A stretch of DNA of 63,949 bases, filler included, from Klebsormidium nitens (Eukaryota > Plantae > Klebsormidiophyceae), in the NCBI GenBank assembly GCA_000708835.1. It is 8 parts of 8 records of this genome, joined end to end, with 100 filler letters (N's around TTAATTAATTAA, not from the genome) between each part and the next. Parts side by side here need not be neighbours in the genome. Positions count along the whole stretch, not along the records: positions 1 to 7,618 come from DF238291.1; 7 more parts are not named here. One strand, given 5' to 3'. Position numbers and translations under genes: made by a program. Shown here one piece after another: positions 1-10,899 of the stretch. The notes beneath the pieces are model-generated. The model searched no databases, had not been told where the DNA came from, and saw only the letters and a program-made list of their open reading frames with translations. Every line of letters starts with the position of its first letter. The first letter of the stretch is position 1.

Positions 1-685
1 CCGCTTCATCAACGGTTTCCTCCTTCATAAGGATTCGACAACTGCCGAACTCATTTCTTAAAGGCCCGAGAGGCATCGTATACAGGCTCAATATCAAATG
101 ATCATTTACGATTTCCTTATCGGTGCGTGTCATTGCTCGGCTATGTTTGAATTTGTCAACGATTGTTCGGGTGATGATTTGATCAAGGTCATCTCTTACA
201 TTGACAATATGGTTCCAAGGAACCCACATTTCGATCTCTTTAGGGGTCTTCTGTTGCATCGTTTGGTCGAGTTCATCCTCAGTGGGTTTCTTTGCTTCGA
301 TGTAATTGCTGTACGCTTTGTGTGCGTCATCAAAGCCCATCTTTTGGGCCAGAATCGAGAAGGGTGCGGCATAACTGCTTTTTGTGAGCGGTTTGATGGG
401 TTTCCCCTTTGTACCTATCAAGCTTTCGATCGCTTCAATAATCCTTTCGTGATTGCCAATCCAATCGATTGACTCGTTATCAGTCAATTGCTTGTTGTAA
501 TTGACGGCTGTATGTACCTTTTGGATTTGACGAACGTACACATTCACCGTCGATTCAGTTCGTGATGTTGGACTTGAACCATCTCGGCCCTCTTTAATCT
601 TGAGTATGCTCCTTAGGTTTGGTAACTCTAGGAGCAATGCTTTGCGTCGATTGTGTGGCAAAGTGTGGATGACTCTTGTGGACAT
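1..685 (-). CDS. Tyrosine recombinase/integrase, PLV/virophage/NCLDV type (N-terminal 228 aa; runs off the window edge)
   Basis: My translation from ATG 685 stays open to base 1: MSTRVIHTLPHN...STVNVYVRQIQKVH...WVPWNHIV...HLILSLYTMPLGPLRNEFGSC. It has a SAM-like N-terminus, a W-x-x-W box and an LYT-x-x-P-x-RN-type motif carrying the first catalytic Arg. It is not in the supplied ORF track. Confidence 0.7.
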   Translation of the reverse strand, partial: MSTRVIHTLPHNRRKALLLELPNLRSILKIKEGRDGSSPTSRTESTVNVYVRQIQKVHTAVNYNKQLTDNESIDWIGNHERIIEAIESLIGTKGKPIKPLTKSSYAAPFSILAQKMGFDDAHKAYSNYIEAKKPTEDELDQTMQQKTPKEIEMWVPWNHIVNVRDDLDQIITRTIVDKFKHSRAMTRTDKEIVNDHLILSLYTMPLGPLRNEFGSCRILMKEETVDEA

Positions 686-765
686 TTTTCTGGTAGCTAG
701 CAGCCGGCTTACTTGAGCTTGACTTATCATTAGAATTTATTTTTCGACGAAAAAGCGAGTTCCAT

Positions 766-1587
766 TTATATGCGTTCGAGGTTGAGTAACTTGTTATCGA
801 AGCTTAACTTCCCACAAAAGTTGCTAAAGTTGCTTCCACTCATCGGTGTCAGCGGGTCCGACACCGATGCTATGAGATACCCACGAGGGATAAGCTCCAA
901 CGTTCGAGCAAGATACTTACAGAACATCTTGGGGAGCTCATATACCTCCCCTTGTTTTCTTAGTTGAAATAGCTGTTTCGATCTGCTGACCTGGATAAGT
1001 GCGTCAATGCTATCATCATGCACCTCCCTCTCATTCTTGAAGAGAACGGGTAAATGATATATCTTAAGACCACGCCTCACATTTGGCTTTATTAGAAGGT
1101 GCCACTCGACCAGCACATGAATCATGATAGTCTTGACATCCTTTCTATCAAGATCGTCTGCATCCAGCGATCGAACCCTTCGGGCCAGCTTAGCACCAAA
1201 ATATTCAACATCTTCTCGAGACATCTCATGAACCTTCGTCGAATCATCCGCATTTTCGACTGCTTGCTTCTTACGAAGTTCCTTCAATGGCTTATTGTCA
1301 TGTTTAAAAGGCCGAAAGTACGTTTGGTAAGCCTCTGAGTAGCCAAGCTTTTTACAAGCGGCAAGGAAGGGGGCCAGACGTGTCCTTCGGGAGCCAGGAT
1401 TGTCGTATCTTTCATGCACGAGTTGAGTAAAGGCTTGTGCATCTGATTCAAGAAACGTCAGGTCAAGCGTGTTAGGAAGTGGCCGATTGTGGCACAAATC
1501 GTAGACGAGGGCAATGCCCCTTACATATTGCTCCACGGATGCTCGAGAGCGAATGTTATCTGTGAACAAACTGCGCAGAGCATCCAT
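766..1587 (-). CDS. Tyrosine recombinase-like paralog lacking the C-terminal catalytic His/Tyr region
   Basis: 273 aa and alignable by eye to the downstream ORF (SVEQYVRGIALVY vs TVNVYVRQIQKVH; LAPFLAACKKLGYSEAYQTY vs AAPFSILAQKMGFDDAHKAY). The C-terminus LELIPRGYL...PMSGSNFS resembles a YR core but stops where the HxxR box is expected. Confidence 0.55.
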   Translation of the reverse strand: MDALRSLFTDNIRSRASVEQYVRGIALVYDLCHNRPLPNTLDLTFLESDAQAFTQLVHERYDNPGSRRTRLAPFLAACKKLGYSEAYQTYFRPFKHDNKPLKELRKKQAVENADDSTKVHEMSREDVEYFGAKLARRVRSLDADDLDRKDVKTIMIHVLVEWHLLIKPNVRRGLKIYHLPVLFKNEREVHDDSIDALIQVSRSKQLFQLRKQGEVYELPKMFCKYLARTLELIPRGYLIASVSDPLTPMSGSNFSNFCGKLSFDNKLLNLERI

Positions 1588-1899
1588 AGTTATTGCTCGT
1601 ATAGTAGGGATTTGACAATAATTTCACACAACCAGACATAGCAACTTCATTTATCTCAAACCTCTCTGTCAAGAAATAATGACAACGAAAAGTAGTACGA
1701 GGTTCACGTATTGATCAATGCTATCGGCAGAGGCAAAATGTTGAGAAAAGTGCACTTTTCTCAACTTGATAACTAGTTACTTCAAAGAGCGTTGTCAGAA
1801 TTCAGTAGCTAAGCCTGTAGCAGAAAATAAAATCGTGGTCAGACAAAAATATGTGACGGTCGATTTAGATCGGACCATCTACATCAACCGCGTGTGAAG

Positions 1900-2457
1900 C
1901 TGGGGTTAACTTCGGGGGCCATTTTTGAGAGAGGGCCAGTTTGGGGGGCAGTTTTTGTTACACGGTATGTGTTGAGCACATCGTACAAGCACACACTCCA
2001 GAGGGGCTAGTTTTTATTACACCGTATGTTGAGCACATCGTACAAGCATACTTTCCAAAGGGTGCACGGTTTGGGGGCCAATTATGGTTACACCGTATGT
2101 TGAGCACACAGTACAAGCATACTTTCCAGACGGAGTTTTTGGGCCAGTTTGAAGAGGGAGCCACTGGGTCGGGGGCCAGTTTTCACACAAGGCCAGTTAA
2201 GGGACCAATTTTGAGAGAGGGCCGGTTTGGGGGCCAGTTTTCCACATCGTATATTGAGCACATTGTGCAAGCACAGTCTCCAGAGGGGCTATTTTTTGTT
2301 ACACCGTATGTTGAGCATATCGTACAAGCAATGATACTTTCTAGAGAACCTGTTTTGGGGCCAGTTTTCCACACCGTATATTGAGCACATCGTGCAAGCA
2401 CACTCTTCAGAGGGGCTAGTTTTTGTTACACCTTATGCTGAGCACATCGTACAGGGG
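1900..2457 (+). repeat. Degenerate tandem array A (about 55-70 bp units; core CACCGTATGTTGAGCACATCGTACAAGCA)
   Basis: About 7 copies of the core near 1971, 2028, 2099, 2253, 2310, 2381 and 2437, separated by related GGGGCCAGTTTT linkers. Confidence 0.9.
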
Positions 2458-2834
2458 TACCCGCCACATGATCCCATGTATATAGATTGGCTCCCTCAGT
2501 CAGTCTGACTTATACCTGCATCGGGCTTCAAAAATTGCACCGGGCTTCCAACAGGTGTGCATCGACCGCTTATGAAAGCTGGGTCGGACCATCAACTCAT
2601 GTTCAATGTCACCCTATGTATGATATGCCATATCCCTGCCCTCGAGTGGCTTGCCCTCGAGTTGTTGGTCGATGTGAATTGAGGCACCGACCAGATTCCT
2701 CGGCACGCACTTTTTAGAACCACGTCAGTCTAAATAAAGAGGATTCATTTGCCGCGGATCGGATGCGGACAATGTCATACTAATTCATGATTCAACTTGA
2801 AAGATTGAGCCTAAAGCTGCTATCAAATGAAGTT

Positions 2835-3370
2835 CTACAGTTCAATCTCTTCATTGCATTCGTCGCAGCGTATTTGGTGGCCAAATCCGAGGTCATTATC
2901 TACTTCTGGACCAATTACAACGGATACGGTGTCTGGCATGTCAAACTTTGTGCTCAGAATCTCTTTTGAATAGCACATCTTCAAGGAGGGCAACTGTGGC
3001 CACACTAAGGGAACGTATCCTTGAATATAGACAGCAGTCACTTGAGGTAGAACGTCCTTCAGAGCTGGGTCGTTTGGGATGTCAACGTCCTTTCTATTGA
3101 AAAAGTACTTCAATGTGGCCCCTCCTCGGAGTCGAAAGACGTGTACATCATTTGAAGCGCTTCATCCGACGCCAAGGCATTGTCGGACTTCAGGTTTGCT
3201 CGTATGTGTGCAACCATCGTCTCCTTGCTTTTGGAGACTTTCCAGCCAGCCTGGTCCGGACGAAAGTACTTGCTCCGGGGCAGGCCGTCGACATAGATGA
3301 AGTTGCTGTGAGCGTATGCGTATCGTTTCACCGGCCATAGATCTACAAGGGGGCCCATGTACAGCATCAT
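2835..3370 (-). CDS. Small ORF pair (86 aa + 92 aa) overlapping at TTGA, or one frameshifted gene of about 178 aa; function unknown
   Basis: ORFs 3370-3110 and 3113-2835 overlap by 4 nt in unique sequence between the two arrays. A TATA-like motif lies upstream. Confidence 0.35.
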
Positions 3371-3512
3371 CTTAGTGCCAAGATTGTCCTAGAATAATGA
3401 GAACGGTTTTCCTAAGTTTCGAAGCTGAAAGCTCAGAATCTTGCTAGATAGTTGAATTCAGAACTGTTGACTGCTTGAGTTTGGAAATGAGACAAATGTA
3501 CAGCGATACCGG

Positions 3513-3520
3513 CTTTTATA
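3513..3520 (-). promoter_or_regulatory. TATA-like box (TATAAAAG) upstream of the cassette ORF
   Basis: The minus strand reads GGCTATAAAAGCC about 145 bp upstream of ATG 3370. A second TATAAAA lies near 3632-3638. Confidence 0.3.
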
Positions 3521-3934
3521 GCCAGTTCTTACCGTCCAAACAGGCCATTGCCAATGAGGCTATACGTTTGGAACTTCGGGCCTTGGGGCGGTGGATGCTG
3601 GAAATGAGAATTCACGGTCGAAAAGTTGGAATTTTATAGGCCGGGACTGCTGCACGGGCAGCTCCGGTCGGGACGGTCCGACCACAAAGCCCTGATATTT
3701 GTCCACGTATACGGAGGGAAACTCCACAATTTTGACTGCGCTTCCACGTGGTGCAATGCGAGGAGAATTTCCTAGGCAGTTAGGTCGCGAAAGCCGGGCT
3801 TGCGTCCACGTTTGGTTTCCAACTGTCCCGCTCGGGAGCAGAGCGGGTCGGGACAGAATCCTTACCGATCTCGGATTGAGGCCACCGGCTGGCACGGACG
3901 GGGGGACCCGTGACGGACAGCTTGGAGGCCTGTT

Positions 3935-5250
3935 TTCACACAGGGTCGGTTTGGGGGCGAGTTTTGAGAGAGGGCCGGTATGGAGTCCAGTTTTTTTACA
4001 CCGTGCTTTGCGCACATCGTACAAGCATACTTTTTAGAGGGCGCCGTTGAATATGCACGCAAGCTGTCTAGGTTTTGCAGACTACACGCATAATACTAAA
4101 CAACAAAAGATAGACATNNNNNNNNNNNNNNNNNNNNGTTGAGCACATCGTACGATGCCAGTTCTGTCTAGGTTTTGCAGACTACAAGCATAATACTAAA
4201 CAACAAAAAATAGACATGAGAGTCTTGTCTTGACATCGTTCGAGCTGTCAAGGAGCTGTAAAGTCGTACGATGCCAGCTCTTGGTGCACCGTATGTTGAG
4301 CACATCGTACGATGCCAGTTTTTGTTACACCATATGTCGAGCACGTCGTACAAGCATACTTTTAAAGGGCGCCCTTGAATCTGCACACAATCTGACGCCA
4401 GATTTTGTTGCACCGTATGTTGAGCACATCGTACGATGCCAGTTTTTCTTACACCGTACTTTGAGCACACCGTACGATGTCAGTTTTAATTACACCGAAC
4501 AACAAAAGATAGACTTTAGATTTTGCAGTCTACAAGCATAATACTAAACAACAAAAGATAGACATGAGAGTCTTGAGCCCGACAAGGAGCCCGATGCCAG
4601 CTTTTTGTTGCGCCATATGTTGAGCACATTGTACGATGCCAGCTTTTGTGACACCGTATGTTGAGCGATGCCAGTTTTTGTTGCACCGTATGTTGAGCAC
4701 ATCGTACGATGCCAATTTGTGTTACACCGTATGTTAAGCGATGCCAGTTTTTGCTGCGCCGTATGTTGAGCACATCGTACGATGCCAGTTTTTGTTGCAC
4801 CGTATNNNNNNNNNNNNNNNNNNNNNNNNNNNNNNNNNNNNNNNNNNNNNNNNNNNNNNNNNNNNNNNNNNNNNNNNNNNNNNNNNNNNNNNNNNNNNNN
4901 NNNNNNNNNNNNNNNNNNNNNGAGAGTCTTGTCTTGACATTGTTCGAGCTGTCAAGGAGCCCGATGCCAGTTTTTGTTGCACCGTATGTTGAGCACATCG
5001 TACGATGCCAGTTTTTGTTACACCGTATGTTAAGCGATGCCAGTTTTTATTGCGCCGTATGTTGAGCACATCGTACGATGCCTGTTTTTGTTACACCGTA
5101 TGTTGAGCACATCGTACAAACATACTCTCCAGAGGGGCTAGTTTTTGTTACACTGTATGCTGAGCGTATCATACACGCATACTTTTCAGAGCCTCCCAGT
5201 TTTGGGGCCAATTTTACACACTGTGTGTGGAGCATATCGTGCAAGCACAC
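3935..5250 (+). repeat. Tandem array B: ~41 bp units with palindrome CATCGTACGATG, interleaved with a ~100 bp block (higher-order repeat)
   Basis: Perfect 12-bp palindrome at 4146, 4303, 4427, 4700, 4773, 4996 and 5069. The block TTTTGCAGACTACAAGCATAATACTAAACAACAAAAGATAGACATGAGAGTCTTG recurs near 4070, 4150 and 4520, with its 3' end at 4922. Same orientation as array A; contains N gaps. Confidence 0.9.
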
Positions 5251-5406
5251 AAAGGCAGCCATTTGTTCTTGGACATCCGAACGGACATGTTGCACGTGTG
5301 CATAAGAGCACTCGGCCTATCTGAAAATGGAAACATGAAAAGCTACTTATGCAACACACACAACCGATAGCAAAAATTTTGTTGTGGTAGTAACATACGA
5401 TACATC

Positions 5407-5979
5407 ATGACGCCGACAATCCGGTCATTTCGGGTACAAGCAGCTTTCGGTGGTAGTTGTAAAGTGGACTTGACCGACAAAGTTTGGAGCAGCCGGCTCC
5501 AGATCAATAGTGAAAGCGGTCGCCCTCTTCAAGCAGGCGCCAGAATCGGTTCCGCCTTATATCGGAGCTTGAAGTTGGAGGCAACTAAGACATGCCGTCC
5601 ACCTCTGGTCTACTACGTTCTACTAATAGAAACTACTCGTGGATCCAAAGGAAAAGTATTTGCATATCAGATCAACATCGAGACCGTGAAGAAGGCCGAA
5701 CAACCGACGGGTCTGGCTTTTGCCGGGACCTACCGAACGAAAACAAGGAAATTCTGCGTCGACACGATATCGAAATGGACTTCTTGTAGCACAAGGAAAC
5801 AGAAGACGCTTTCGTCAAAAACCACTAGCAAACATTCCTCTGATACGGAGGAATCATCAGATGACGAGTCAAAAGTTGACGCAGGACCCAAACGCCAGAC
5901 TCGAGGACCGTCGAAGTCAGTGAAAGATACCAATAAGGGTGATTCGCACTCTAAGAAAGCTAACCGGAAAGCAACATGA
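5407..5979 (+). CDS. MC1-like (non-histone chromosomal) DNA-binding protein of giant-virus type, with a basic/acidic tail
   Basis: RSFRV...SGRPLQAGARIGSALY...LLIETTRGSKGKVFAY matches my recollection of the NCLDV MC1-domain pattern (P-x-QAA-x-KA ... ETTRGS-x-K-K-x-Y-x-Y). The C-terminus is K/S/T-rich. Confidence 0.6.
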   Translation: MTPTIRSFRVQAAFGGSCKVDLTDKVWSSRLQINSESGRPLQAGARIGSALYRSLKLEATKTCRPPLVYYVLLIETTRGSKGKVFAYQINIETVKKAEQPTGLAFAGTYRTKTRKFCVDTISKWTSCSTRKQKTLSSKTTSKHSSDTEESSDDESKVDAGPKRQTRGPSKSVKDTNKGDSHSKKANRKAT

Positions 5980-6103
5980 TAACGGTGTGATTCCGTTATC
6001 ACATTTCAAAAAACAAACTATGCTCACCGTTAAGAAACGTATTCGGTCAGCCCTATTTTCGTTGACGTAAGTATATGCAGAGGTAGTGGCCCGATTGCCA
6101 ACA

Positions 6104-6556
6104 ATGGGAATGAACATCTCTGAGTCCAATGTTGACACCCTGTTCGACAAGAAAATTGATCTCGCTCGATGTGAGAGCCTATCAAACGGCACCGGGGTGA
6201 AGTACTATCCATGTGTCCTACAAATCGGGCTTTCCTTGCAAAGCACAGAAATCATTGGTGTTGGCTTATGCCTTCTCATTCGCAAGATTGTCGACATGCA
6301 AGCAGATGCGACCAAAGTCACGTTAGGTGACCTTCATAAAAGGCTCATCTGCATGTTGATCAAACCGGCGGAGCATTATCAAAGCTACACGCTTATTGTT
6401 GAAGATGCAATATTTCATCTCCATGAGTTGTTTATACTCCTAAAGCACGCAGCGAGCTACTTGTTGATTGATGAAGCTGATATTAAACCGGATGAGATTG
6501 CAAGCTTAATACAGACAAAGCTTGAAATGTGTACCAGCCCGGCCCATGTAGCTTGA
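6104..6556 (+). CDS. Orphan protein with a paralog at 59476-60002
   Basis: FDKKIDLARCESLSNGTGVKYYPCVLQIGL...IGVGLCLLIRKI...LIKPAE closely matches the 59.5-60 kb minus-strand ORF. Confidence 0.65.
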   Translation: MGMNISESNVDTLFDKKIDLARCESLSNGTGVKYYPCVLQIGLSLQSTEIIGVGLCLLIRKIVDMQADATKVTLGDLHKRLICMLIKPAEHYQSYTLIVEDAIFHLHELFILLKHAASYLLIDEADIKPDEIASLIQTKLEMCTSPAHVA

Positions 6557-6644
6557 CAACCTGAGCAAGTGTCCGATGTTATCAAGCTACTGTAGTTAAC
6601 CCCATTGATTGGGTCAAGGCCAGTCCAAGCTGTCCAAGCTTTGG

Positions 6645-7283
6645 TTAAAATATTTCTGGTCGCGAATTGCTGCACTCGTCAACCTCTACTCGGCATGTGA
6701 ACCTGTTCCTTCTATTCTCTTCCAAGTTCTTTCTCAAGCCCCCGTACCTATCATCTAGGGCCTTCCAGTTCGGCATAGGAACGACCATATGGGAGCCTTT
6801 GCGAGCTCCATGCGAAAACCGTGCCATCTGTATGGTAAGGCCTAGCCCTCCCTCCAATATCATCTTGATTACGTTTCGCTTCCGCACCGCCGACAGGTCC
6901 TTCCCCACGAAAGACGTCTTAGGTCGATAGAGGGTCTCTAGGACCTCGAGAGACCTGAGCATCTTGAAGTCTTCCTCGTCGAAGACTTTTAGCGCCCTCT
7001 CCTCTTCAGCACCCCCATCGATCAACCTGAAGCTTCCAAACACGGTGTTGTCGATGTTCCCAGGAGCGATGCCCAGCAACTTTGCCAAGACACACCACGC
7101 ATAGTTGATGCCATTAGCCGGTCTGTTCCTGATCTCGAGGTACTCCTGGACGTTCCGTCTCTGTTCCCCTTCTTCAACGGCGGCGCTCAGGGTGTCGACG
7201 GTAGATATGTACTTGGACGAGACGAACCTGCCATCAAGGTGATTGATTGTTTTTCGTTGGCTCCCGGTGATCCCAAATATCAT
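6645..7283 (-). CDS. Hypothetical protein (212 aa, intronless)
   Basis: ATG-started ORF with protein-like composition, convergent with the orphan gene; no family recognised. Confidence 0.5.
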   Translation of the reverse strand: MIFGITGSQRKTINHLDGRFVSSKYISTVDTLSAAVEEGEQRRNVQEYLEIRNRPANGINYAWCVLAKLLGIAPGNIDNTVFGSFRLIDGGAEEERALKVFDEEDFKMLRSLEVLETLYRPKTSFVGKDLSAVRKRNVIKMILEGGLGLTIQMARFSHGARKGSHMVVPMPNWKALDDRYGGLRKNLEENRRNRFTCRVEVDECSNSRPEIF

Positions 7284-7322
7284 TACTTTGTCTCACCACA
7301 AAAGCACGCATCACATAGTAAA

Positions 7323-7618
7323 CTACAAACGTTTGAACATGCACTTATGTACATGCTCTAACCAAATGGTCCGACTAGAGTCGCAACACAAGCATCGGAG
7401 TTCGGCAACCAACCTTTCGTAGTTTTGGAAGTTGGCCATCAGGTTCTTTGCATGCTTTCCCCGCACGTACTCGTCCACGAACTGGGGGTCCACCTTCCTG
7501 TAGTCGATCGCGTAGCAGTAGACAGCGGCTTCGAAGATCTCGTAATTGAGGACGTCCTGGCTGGTGACCCCCCCGGACGAAGAGCCGAGCATCCCTCTGA
7601 TCTCTTCGAACCGCTCCC
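7323..7618 (-). CDS. Hypothetical protein, 5' end lost in the gap
   Basis: The frame is open from the gap edge through YEIFEAAVYCYAIDYRKVD...CMFKRL and ends 40 bp before the next ATG. Confidence 0.4.
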
Positions 7619-9864: not shown

Positions 9865-10899
9865 TCCGCTCATCACAGGTGTTTCGAGTTGGTGTAGGGG
9901 TCGCTGATAAACATAGCCGTCCGTTCATTGTTCATAAGCTGACGACGAAAATTGTCCACTGGAATTTGGGTTGATATGTACACTGTAGGCCACAGCCGCC
10001 AAATTGTGGACCAATTGCAGTCATCCGTGTCGCATGTTTCTGTCCTTGACACGGCTTCGTTCGACATGACGTATCTTCCAGGCGGGCTTGAATCTATCTG
10101 CAAACCATAGGCCCGTTTTCGAGTGCATGGCAGCTAGCTCGTATTGATCTTGTTGGTCGGTTACCTTAACCTGAAGCGATTTGAGCTTTTCTACTTCTGC
10201 GCACCCTGGTTTAGCAAGATTACTGGCACGTATTGTTAAGTCCTTGCTTCTCATGCATCGCCCTTTCATGTGAAGCAAGGTACTAGCCAACTCGAGACCA
10301 TTCGGCCCTGCATGTGCATCCGGCCCTGACGTGCAATTGTGGTGTGCATTGAAAAATGGTTGACATGCCATGCACAAGACCATCGCAGCCCCTGTATAGA
10401 AGCAATTATAGACGATGCAGAAACTGTGGGTATTGCGGAATGTCGAGATATATATCTAGCTGTACCTGGTAACCGGTTACCATGCAGCATGCAATCTGCA
10501 ATCGTCCTCTAACATGCATGTCTTGTATACTTAGGCCTATCAATATGTTCAATCAGACCAAGACAATGATGCAGACTCATTAATGGCATGACACTGAATC
10601 ACTCAGAAAGTTGAAACTTCGAGATTCCTGCCAGATGTCTGCAGCAAAATTGGAATGGTTTTGCCGTCTCTTTATAACATGGACATAGCCGTCCATTGCA
10701 ACCAGAATTGCCTTTCCCACCTTATCAACTGACAAAGTGTGGAACCCTGTGCTTTCGTGATGAACCTGTTCGAGGCTGACCTTACACACGTGACCTTTTG
10801 TAAATGTATCTATATGTCCGTCCGCTCGCGACTTCCCCCAAAAAAGTCGCCCATCATTGAGATTTCTAGCAATGTGTCAAAGAGTCCCCAACAACCTGC

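Follow-up and report, generated by a model that had tools for sequence, protein, structure and literature searches.

A multi-copy, virus-like integrated element with a predicted tyrosine recombinase and a tyrosine-less paralogue in the streptophyte alga Klebsormidium nitens

Organization of the locus

The piece analysed in this study comprises positions 1-7618 of the stretch shown above (7618 nucleotides of record DF238291.1 from Klebsormidium nitens). It is probably one end, carrying the recombination module, of a single copy of an integrated DNA element whose family occurs in a Klebsormidium-like alga. It contains six coding regions: the open reading frames (ORFs) A and B on the minus strand, D and E on the plus strand, F/G on the minus strand, and a pair of small ORFs within repeats. 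The features of the element core are:

1-685, minus strand: ORF A, the N-terminal 228 codons of a predicted tyrosine recombinase, truncated at the left edge of the piece
766-1587, minus strand: ORF B, 273 amino acids (aa), a paralogue of A with the core-binding domain and the first half of the catalytic domain
1740-1765, no strand: perfect palindrome of 26 nucleotides (nt), its centre ~165 nt upstream of the start codon of B
5407-5979, plus strand: ORF D, 190 aa, a domain of ~125 aa (predicted beta-beta-alpha-beta-beta-beta) followed by a disordered tail
6104-6556, plus strand: ORF E, 150 aa, conserved beside D in the closest lineage

Each of A, B, D and E is a compact open frame free of introns, as an earlier note on this DNA had described. 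Their ratios of nonsynonymous to synonymous substitutions (dN/dS) between the window copy and its nearest relatives range from 0.14 to 0.27, and the four genes have therefore diverged under constraint. The GC content at third codon positions (GC3) lies between 0.49 and 0.51 in these genes versus 0.66 to 0.75 in F/G. By this measure the segment 6645-7618 is the only compositional outlier of the piece; the intron-rich host region reported by the earlier note as a neighbour does not lie in the piece. ORFs B and D are spaced 3.8 kb apart, a distance that includes all repeat arrays. Scans of all window ORFs against Pfam, PHROGs and NCBIfam yielded no significant match, and nothing was found in the piece with Rfam and tRNA scans.

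ORF A affiliates with virus-associated tyrosine recombinases

ORF A belongs to a family of proteins of 350 to 366 aa with the motifs and the fold of tyrosine recombinases. The window copy includes only the first catalytic arginine, located within the motif LYTMPLGPLRNEF; an alternative ATG is present upstream of the ORF at position 730. In the full-length relatives, the arginine motif, a lysine in a beta-hairpin, the motifs LLRH and GH and a C-terminal tyrosine follow each other in the order typical of recombinases. This R-K-R-H-Y order and the two-domain fold are shared with Cre, XerA and Flp, from which the A family differs in the lack of a sequence-level match and in the first residue of the H-x-x-R box, where the histidine is replaced.

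In a Foldseek search of PDB with an AlphaFold model of A, the top matches were all tyrosine recombinases (XerA, Cre; probability 0.87-0.94, E 0.03-0.07). The corresponding search of BFVD retrieved 13 viral proteins at E<=1e-3, their sources being a virophage and giant viruses of algae. Aureococcus anophagefferens virus, Heterosigma akashiwo virus, Tetraselmis virus 1 and Qinghai Lake virophage are represented among these structural neighbours; VLF-1 of nudiviruses and baculoviruses was next in the list, under this cut-off. The top matches in both databases point to a two-domain recombinase fold. The closest known counterparts of A are OLV11-like and related tyrosine recombinases, which occur in polinton-like viruses, in virophages and in giant viruses of algae (PMC4642659). 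OLV11 itself was not returned by name, and A differs from this group in being paired with a tyrosine-less paralogue and in lacking a detectable capsid module. A distant homologue of A (26% identity) is encoded in a 20-kb IMG/VR contig together with an A32-type ATPase and a lipase; this contig looks like a polinton-like virus, in agreement with the known presence of such recombinases in that group (PMC4642659). Both proteins have the first-arginine motif LY..P.RN. The same contig also contains a TET/JBP dioxygenase beside a TET-associated glycosyltransferase (L009:10848-12580; L numbers designate the loci fetched for comparison). On the evidence of the modelled fold and the motifs, A is predicted to be a tyrosine recombinase of the virus-associated kind.

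ORF B is a paralogue without the nucleophile

The relationship of A and B, proposed in the earlier note as two related recombinase-like genes, was recovered by pairwise comparison (E 3e-5 over 84 residues) and by profile-profile comparison (probability 93%, E 2.8e-7, 229 columns). The two align across the core-binding domain and as far as midway through the catalytic domain, and B is ~90 residues shorter than A. No conserved tyrosine or histidine block occurs in the last 60 residues of the B family, so that by its sequence B is a paralogue of A lacking the nucleophile. Identities of 44 to 88% have been kept across lineages, so B is maintained as a gene and has not decayed. A PDB sequence search with B had no result, an exact look-up of the window protein returned no record, and the IMG/VR scan for the B family gave no relatives.

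A palindrome conserved upstream of ORF B

The 26-nt palindrome was present at the aligned position in all nine copies examined. It occurs in five sequence variants, each of them symmetric save for single defects in two copies, with the central hexamers GTGCAC, ATCGAT, CTCGAG and GTCGAC. Scored as a helix, 90.4% of the cells are paired versus 76.5% in shuffles, none of which reached the observed value (0/500), and sliding the partner by one to three columns lowers pairing to 40-55%. Six of the 13 pairs have been altered on both sides. Palindrome half-sites were not enriched at the element borders. The palindrome may bind the recombinase pair or a regulator, serve in resolution, or act as an origin. 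Another conserved block, symmetric in GTCA...TGAC (1661-1685), lies ~80-100 nt upstream of the B start, likewise in 9/9 copies, and is followed by a TATA-like AT-rich block.

Relatives and synteny

Searches recovered 16 protein clusters with B, 18 with A and 21 with D, nearly all from two Joint Genome Institute (JGI) metagenome samples, with a few from Logan assemblies and some from Klebsormidium nitens. Contigs of the relatives carry plant-type genes, namely a TIR-NB-ARC-LRR gene and intron-split G-patch/Surp exons, and in K. nitens SufBD and FrhB are the neighbours; hence these contigs are algal nuclear DNA. Lineages sharing just 44-50% protein identity have the same gene order: D, (E), B, A, primase-helicase. 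In all relatives, B is followed on the minus strand by A and then by a primase-helicase of the Prim-Pol/D5_N/superfamily-3 type, while D and E on the plus strand diverge from B and the conserved palindrome lies between B and D. The primase-helicase resembles D5/C962R, and its matches include solved structures of animal-virus helicases. It is intact in L003 and L013 and split into several ORFs in several other relatives; the IMG/VR scan for it gave no relatives. Some lineages of the family carry extra blocks.

One copy was seen whole, at ~12.4 kb between host genes (TIR-NB-ARC-LRR and G-patch/Surp); no terminal repeats were found around it. A 2-kb remnant beside SufBD in K. nitens retains D, B and the first ~79 codons of A.

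Several neighbourhoods were recorded in addition. A distance of ~2.3 kb separates the TIR-NB-ARC-LRR gene, of the immune-receptor type, from an element copy at its D end (L003:1-2421, continuing in L012). A retroelement with reverse transcriptase and RNase H, probably a nested or neighbouring retrotransposon, and an ORF with a PHD finger are located just downstream of a split primase-helicase (L015:6534-9651). In K. nitens DF237348.1 (L011:1-14327), annotated gene models resemble spliced models laid over element ORFs (KFL_003990120), and one of 1516 aa joins the domains Herpes_ori_bp and DUF8368; its type of helicase is also encoded upstream of D in L004 and L014.

Nature of the element

Together, these results support a virus-like element that is integrated in multiple copies in a streptophyte alga and encodes a tyrosine recombinase together with a paralogous partner. 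The proposal of the earlier note, a DNA virus or transposon of a streptophyte alga integrating by a tyrosine recombinase, stands in this form, the recombinase being of a type known from polinton-like viruses, virophages and giant viruses of algae. The description given in the earlier note is partly confirmed, and its interpretation partly supported. We place the present family, as a variant, among the virus-like elements that integrate by tyrosine recombinase. In the integrated polinton-like elements of Guillardia theta, the recombinase gene is located near one extremity and a primase is fused to a superfamily-3 helicase, an architecture known from giant viruses (PMC4642659); the present family has both traits in common with them.

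Several observations weigh against this assignment. The catalytic half of A is missing from the window copy owing to the edge of the piece. Integrase profiles of Pfam and NCBIfam did not match the A family (16 members) at E<=1, and PDB sequence searches with the A profile and with a widened A profile had no result. The AlphaFold model of A is of moderate quality, with a predicted local distance difference test score (pLDDT) of 68.5, and the TM-scores of its matches reach just 0.3-0.5. The palindrome cannot be the integration crossover because it is intact within integrated copies. No ends of the element were mapped, nor any target duplications or split sites, and the roles proposed below for B, D and E are purely inferential.

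The element might be a true polinton-like virus or virophage with its capsid genes among the conserved ORFs of the relatives that lack an assignment (~529, 413, 252 and 195 aa), since capsid proteins of these viruses often escape Pfam. The size of ~12-14 kb, the virus-type recombinase and the primase-helicase all fit a polinton-like virus (PMC4642659). On the other side, these ORFs had no match in PDB or Pfam and no relative in IMG/VR, the scan with the 529-aa ORF included. Pfam detected no A32-type ATPase, and the sole clear Walker A motif of the element core is that of the helicase. Neither a major or minor capsid protein nor an A32-type packaging ATPase was detected in the relatives by Pfam, NCBIfam, PDB sequence search or a Walker-A scan, all of them sequence methods. 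We consider a true virus of this kind possible but rather unlikely. With similar caution, the family may tentatively be seen as a capsid-less, self-replicating integrative element, derived from polinton-like viruses and now plasmid- or transposon-like, in which the recombinase has become a fixed pair of a catalytic and a tyrosine-less protein acting on a symmetric, compensatorily kept site.

The palindrome offers a further explanation, namely a hairpin-forming resolution or origin site on which A acts as a resolvase of replicated or linear forms instead of an integrase. Its symmetry is held through the very centre in all five variants, it is intact in integrated copies, and it adjoins the recombinase genes. 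Nevertheless, a dimeric regulator site accounts equally well for the symmetry, and a protelomerase ranked just 17th among the fold matches of A (probability 0.18); a resolvase is thus improbable.

Slightly less probable again is a fragment of an endogenised giant virus. Giant-virus-like core genes are present in K. nitens (PMC5294986), the proteins structurally closest to A come from giant viruses, and the helicase of the relatives resembles D5/C962R. However, the host genes bounding the whole copy are only ~12.4 kb apart, and ~150 kb of fetched loci contain no giant-virus capsid, polymerase B or A32 gene; instead of several giant-virus core genes in one long insert, only the D5-like helicase was found. 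With regard to a transposon of the Crypton or DIRS type, the linked primase-helicase argues against it on grounds of architecture. In the literature, giant-virus inserts in Klebsormidium have been reported, and nothing was found on the present element family.

ORFs D and E

We assume ORF D to be the gene that the earlier note had called MC1-like. Its tail is disordered and rich in serine, lysine and acidic residues, and its family is small, with 15 representatives among 1.84 billion proteins. Pfam searches with 17 family members and 10 remote relatives matched neither MC1 (PF05854, an archaeal chromatin protein) nor any other family, and MC1 was equally absent from the remaining window ORFs (34 ORFs of >=60 aa in all). 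PDB sequence searches with D and with the D profile retrieved nothing, solved MC1 chains included. The structural model of D was poor (pLDDT 48), which leaves its fold search uninformative; Foldseek returned no match above a probability of 0.15 with it and listed no MC1. The only feature that D has in common with MC1 is a small beta-rich domain of comparable size in a low-confidence model, and profile and sequence matches are lacking. The label MC1 is therefore unsupported. Of the two assignments that the earlier note had left to profile searches, the recombinase fails in Pfam but passes the fold search and the inspection of motifs, whereas MC1 fails in both sequence and profile searches. The stop codon of ORF E lies within a 13-nt inverted repeat of 92% complementarity (6548-6590).

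Repeat arrays and the private block

The spacer between B and D contains the following features, none of which has a strand unless stated:

1901-5264: private block of 3.36 kb (3364 nt), containing all arrays
1934-2471, 3895-4056 and 5084-5250: arrays of 57-nt units, within the private block
2472-3894: unique segment of 1.4 kb, within the private block
2835-3370, minus strand: pair of ORFs of 86 and 92 codons in two different frames, within the private block
4057-5117: higher-order repeat of a ~60-nt spacer with 41- and 32-nt units, holding both N gaps

The arrays are real: their 25-mer core has 14 matches at <=3 mismatches versus 0 expected, and they comprise 18 copies of a 60-nt family, units of 57, 41 and 32 nt, and a higher-order repeat. 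The earlier note had described them as palindromic, which applies only to the joints of the 41-nt units, where a 12-nt palindrome occurs in 9 copies (7 of them exact); the 57-nt units have none. At both N gaps the flanks do not keep the register of the intact copies beside them in the higher-order repeat, and hence sequence is missing at both and the assembly does not give the true length of the array. The N runs give rise to artefactual ORFs across the gaps, and no real gene crosses a gap. The ORF pair at 2835-3370 has no relatives and no family match; if it were one gene, one frame change or an intron would be required.

Over their full length, window positions 12-1900 and 5265-6672 can be aligned with L001 and L007 and, less tightly, with L006; these three copies have ~20 nt at the place of the 3364 nt of the window. 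Neither the array core nor any other part of the block was detected in the 15 fetched related loci, and a 22-mer of the array had zero matches in the metagenome collection. A nested known transposon was considered as the source of the arrays and rejected, the block being without terminal inverted repeats; inverted repeats bounding it were not found. A short native motif at the empty site is similar to the G-rich part of the array unit, and a local expansion seeded at this motif plus a 1.4-kb unique insertion is as likely as a single foreign insertion. In L013 (1407-2860), an unrelated extra of 1.3 kb with a 31-nt repeat in 3.8 copies occupies the same spot, so this stretch of the spacer tolerates additions. 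The block would accordingly be a private insertion or expansion at a variable spot of the B-D spacer, with no part in the mechanism of the family.

Since the arrays are missing from all related copies, they are not the working site of the family. The earlier note had suggested that recombinase, partner, MC1-like DNA bender and arrays possibly act together as one recombination machine. In its favour, all of these lie inside 6 kb and the arrays occupy the spacer adjoining the recombinase pair, but with the array core absent from 15 related loci and its 22-mer from the metagenome collection, ~20 nt where the block sits in three close copies, and no MC1 signal, such a machine is hardly tenable.

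The right end of the piece

Two further features are located downstream of ORF E:

6574-6672, no strand: non-coding unit of ~100 nt, within which the similarity to the closest relatives stops, at 6672
6645-7618, minus strand: ORF F/G, one frame with a single in-frame stop, running off the right edge of the piece

The ~100-nt unit is single in the window and in L001. In L007 it forms a fourfold tandem (2079-2478) with one inverted copy 8 kb away (10720-10807), and between these two sites lie a second primase-helicase, which is fragmented, and a further conserved ORF (see also L001:694-2029). This arrangement possibly represents a separate element with inverted repeats at its borders.

The codon composition of F/G is either host-like or foreign. 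Its lower part shares 28% identity with a homologue at the equivalent place in L004, its only relative, and the metagenome scan for ORF F gave none. F/G was also considered as the C-terminus of the helicase, and no similarity was found. F/G may be host DNA, belong to another element lineage or be part of the present element.

Proposed roles and significance

In the proposed mechanism, A would catalyse integration, excision or resolution of the element, and the primase-helicase would replicate its free form. ORF B would be a non-catalytic DNA-binding partner or regulator, by analogy with the recombinase-fold repressors YopR and MrpR of phage SPbeta, which are a precedent for recombinase-fold proteins that only bind DNA; both are among the fold matches (8bj6, 8a0a), although these were obtained with the model of A and not of B. 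The palindrome would be a candidate binding site for A, B or both, and D would be a small nuclear protein associated with DNA or chromatin, distinct from MC1.

Among algae, the streptophytes are most closely related to land plants, and to our knowledge their small integrating DNA elements have scarcely been described. The piece illustrates that striking repeat arrays can be a private accident of a single copy. The family, for its part, offers a recombinase lineage that standard profiles do not see, a conserved pair of a catalytic and a non-catalytic gene, and a candidate binding site whose position is precisely known and whose natural variants are compensatory, through which the relation between protein and site can be studied by comparison alone.

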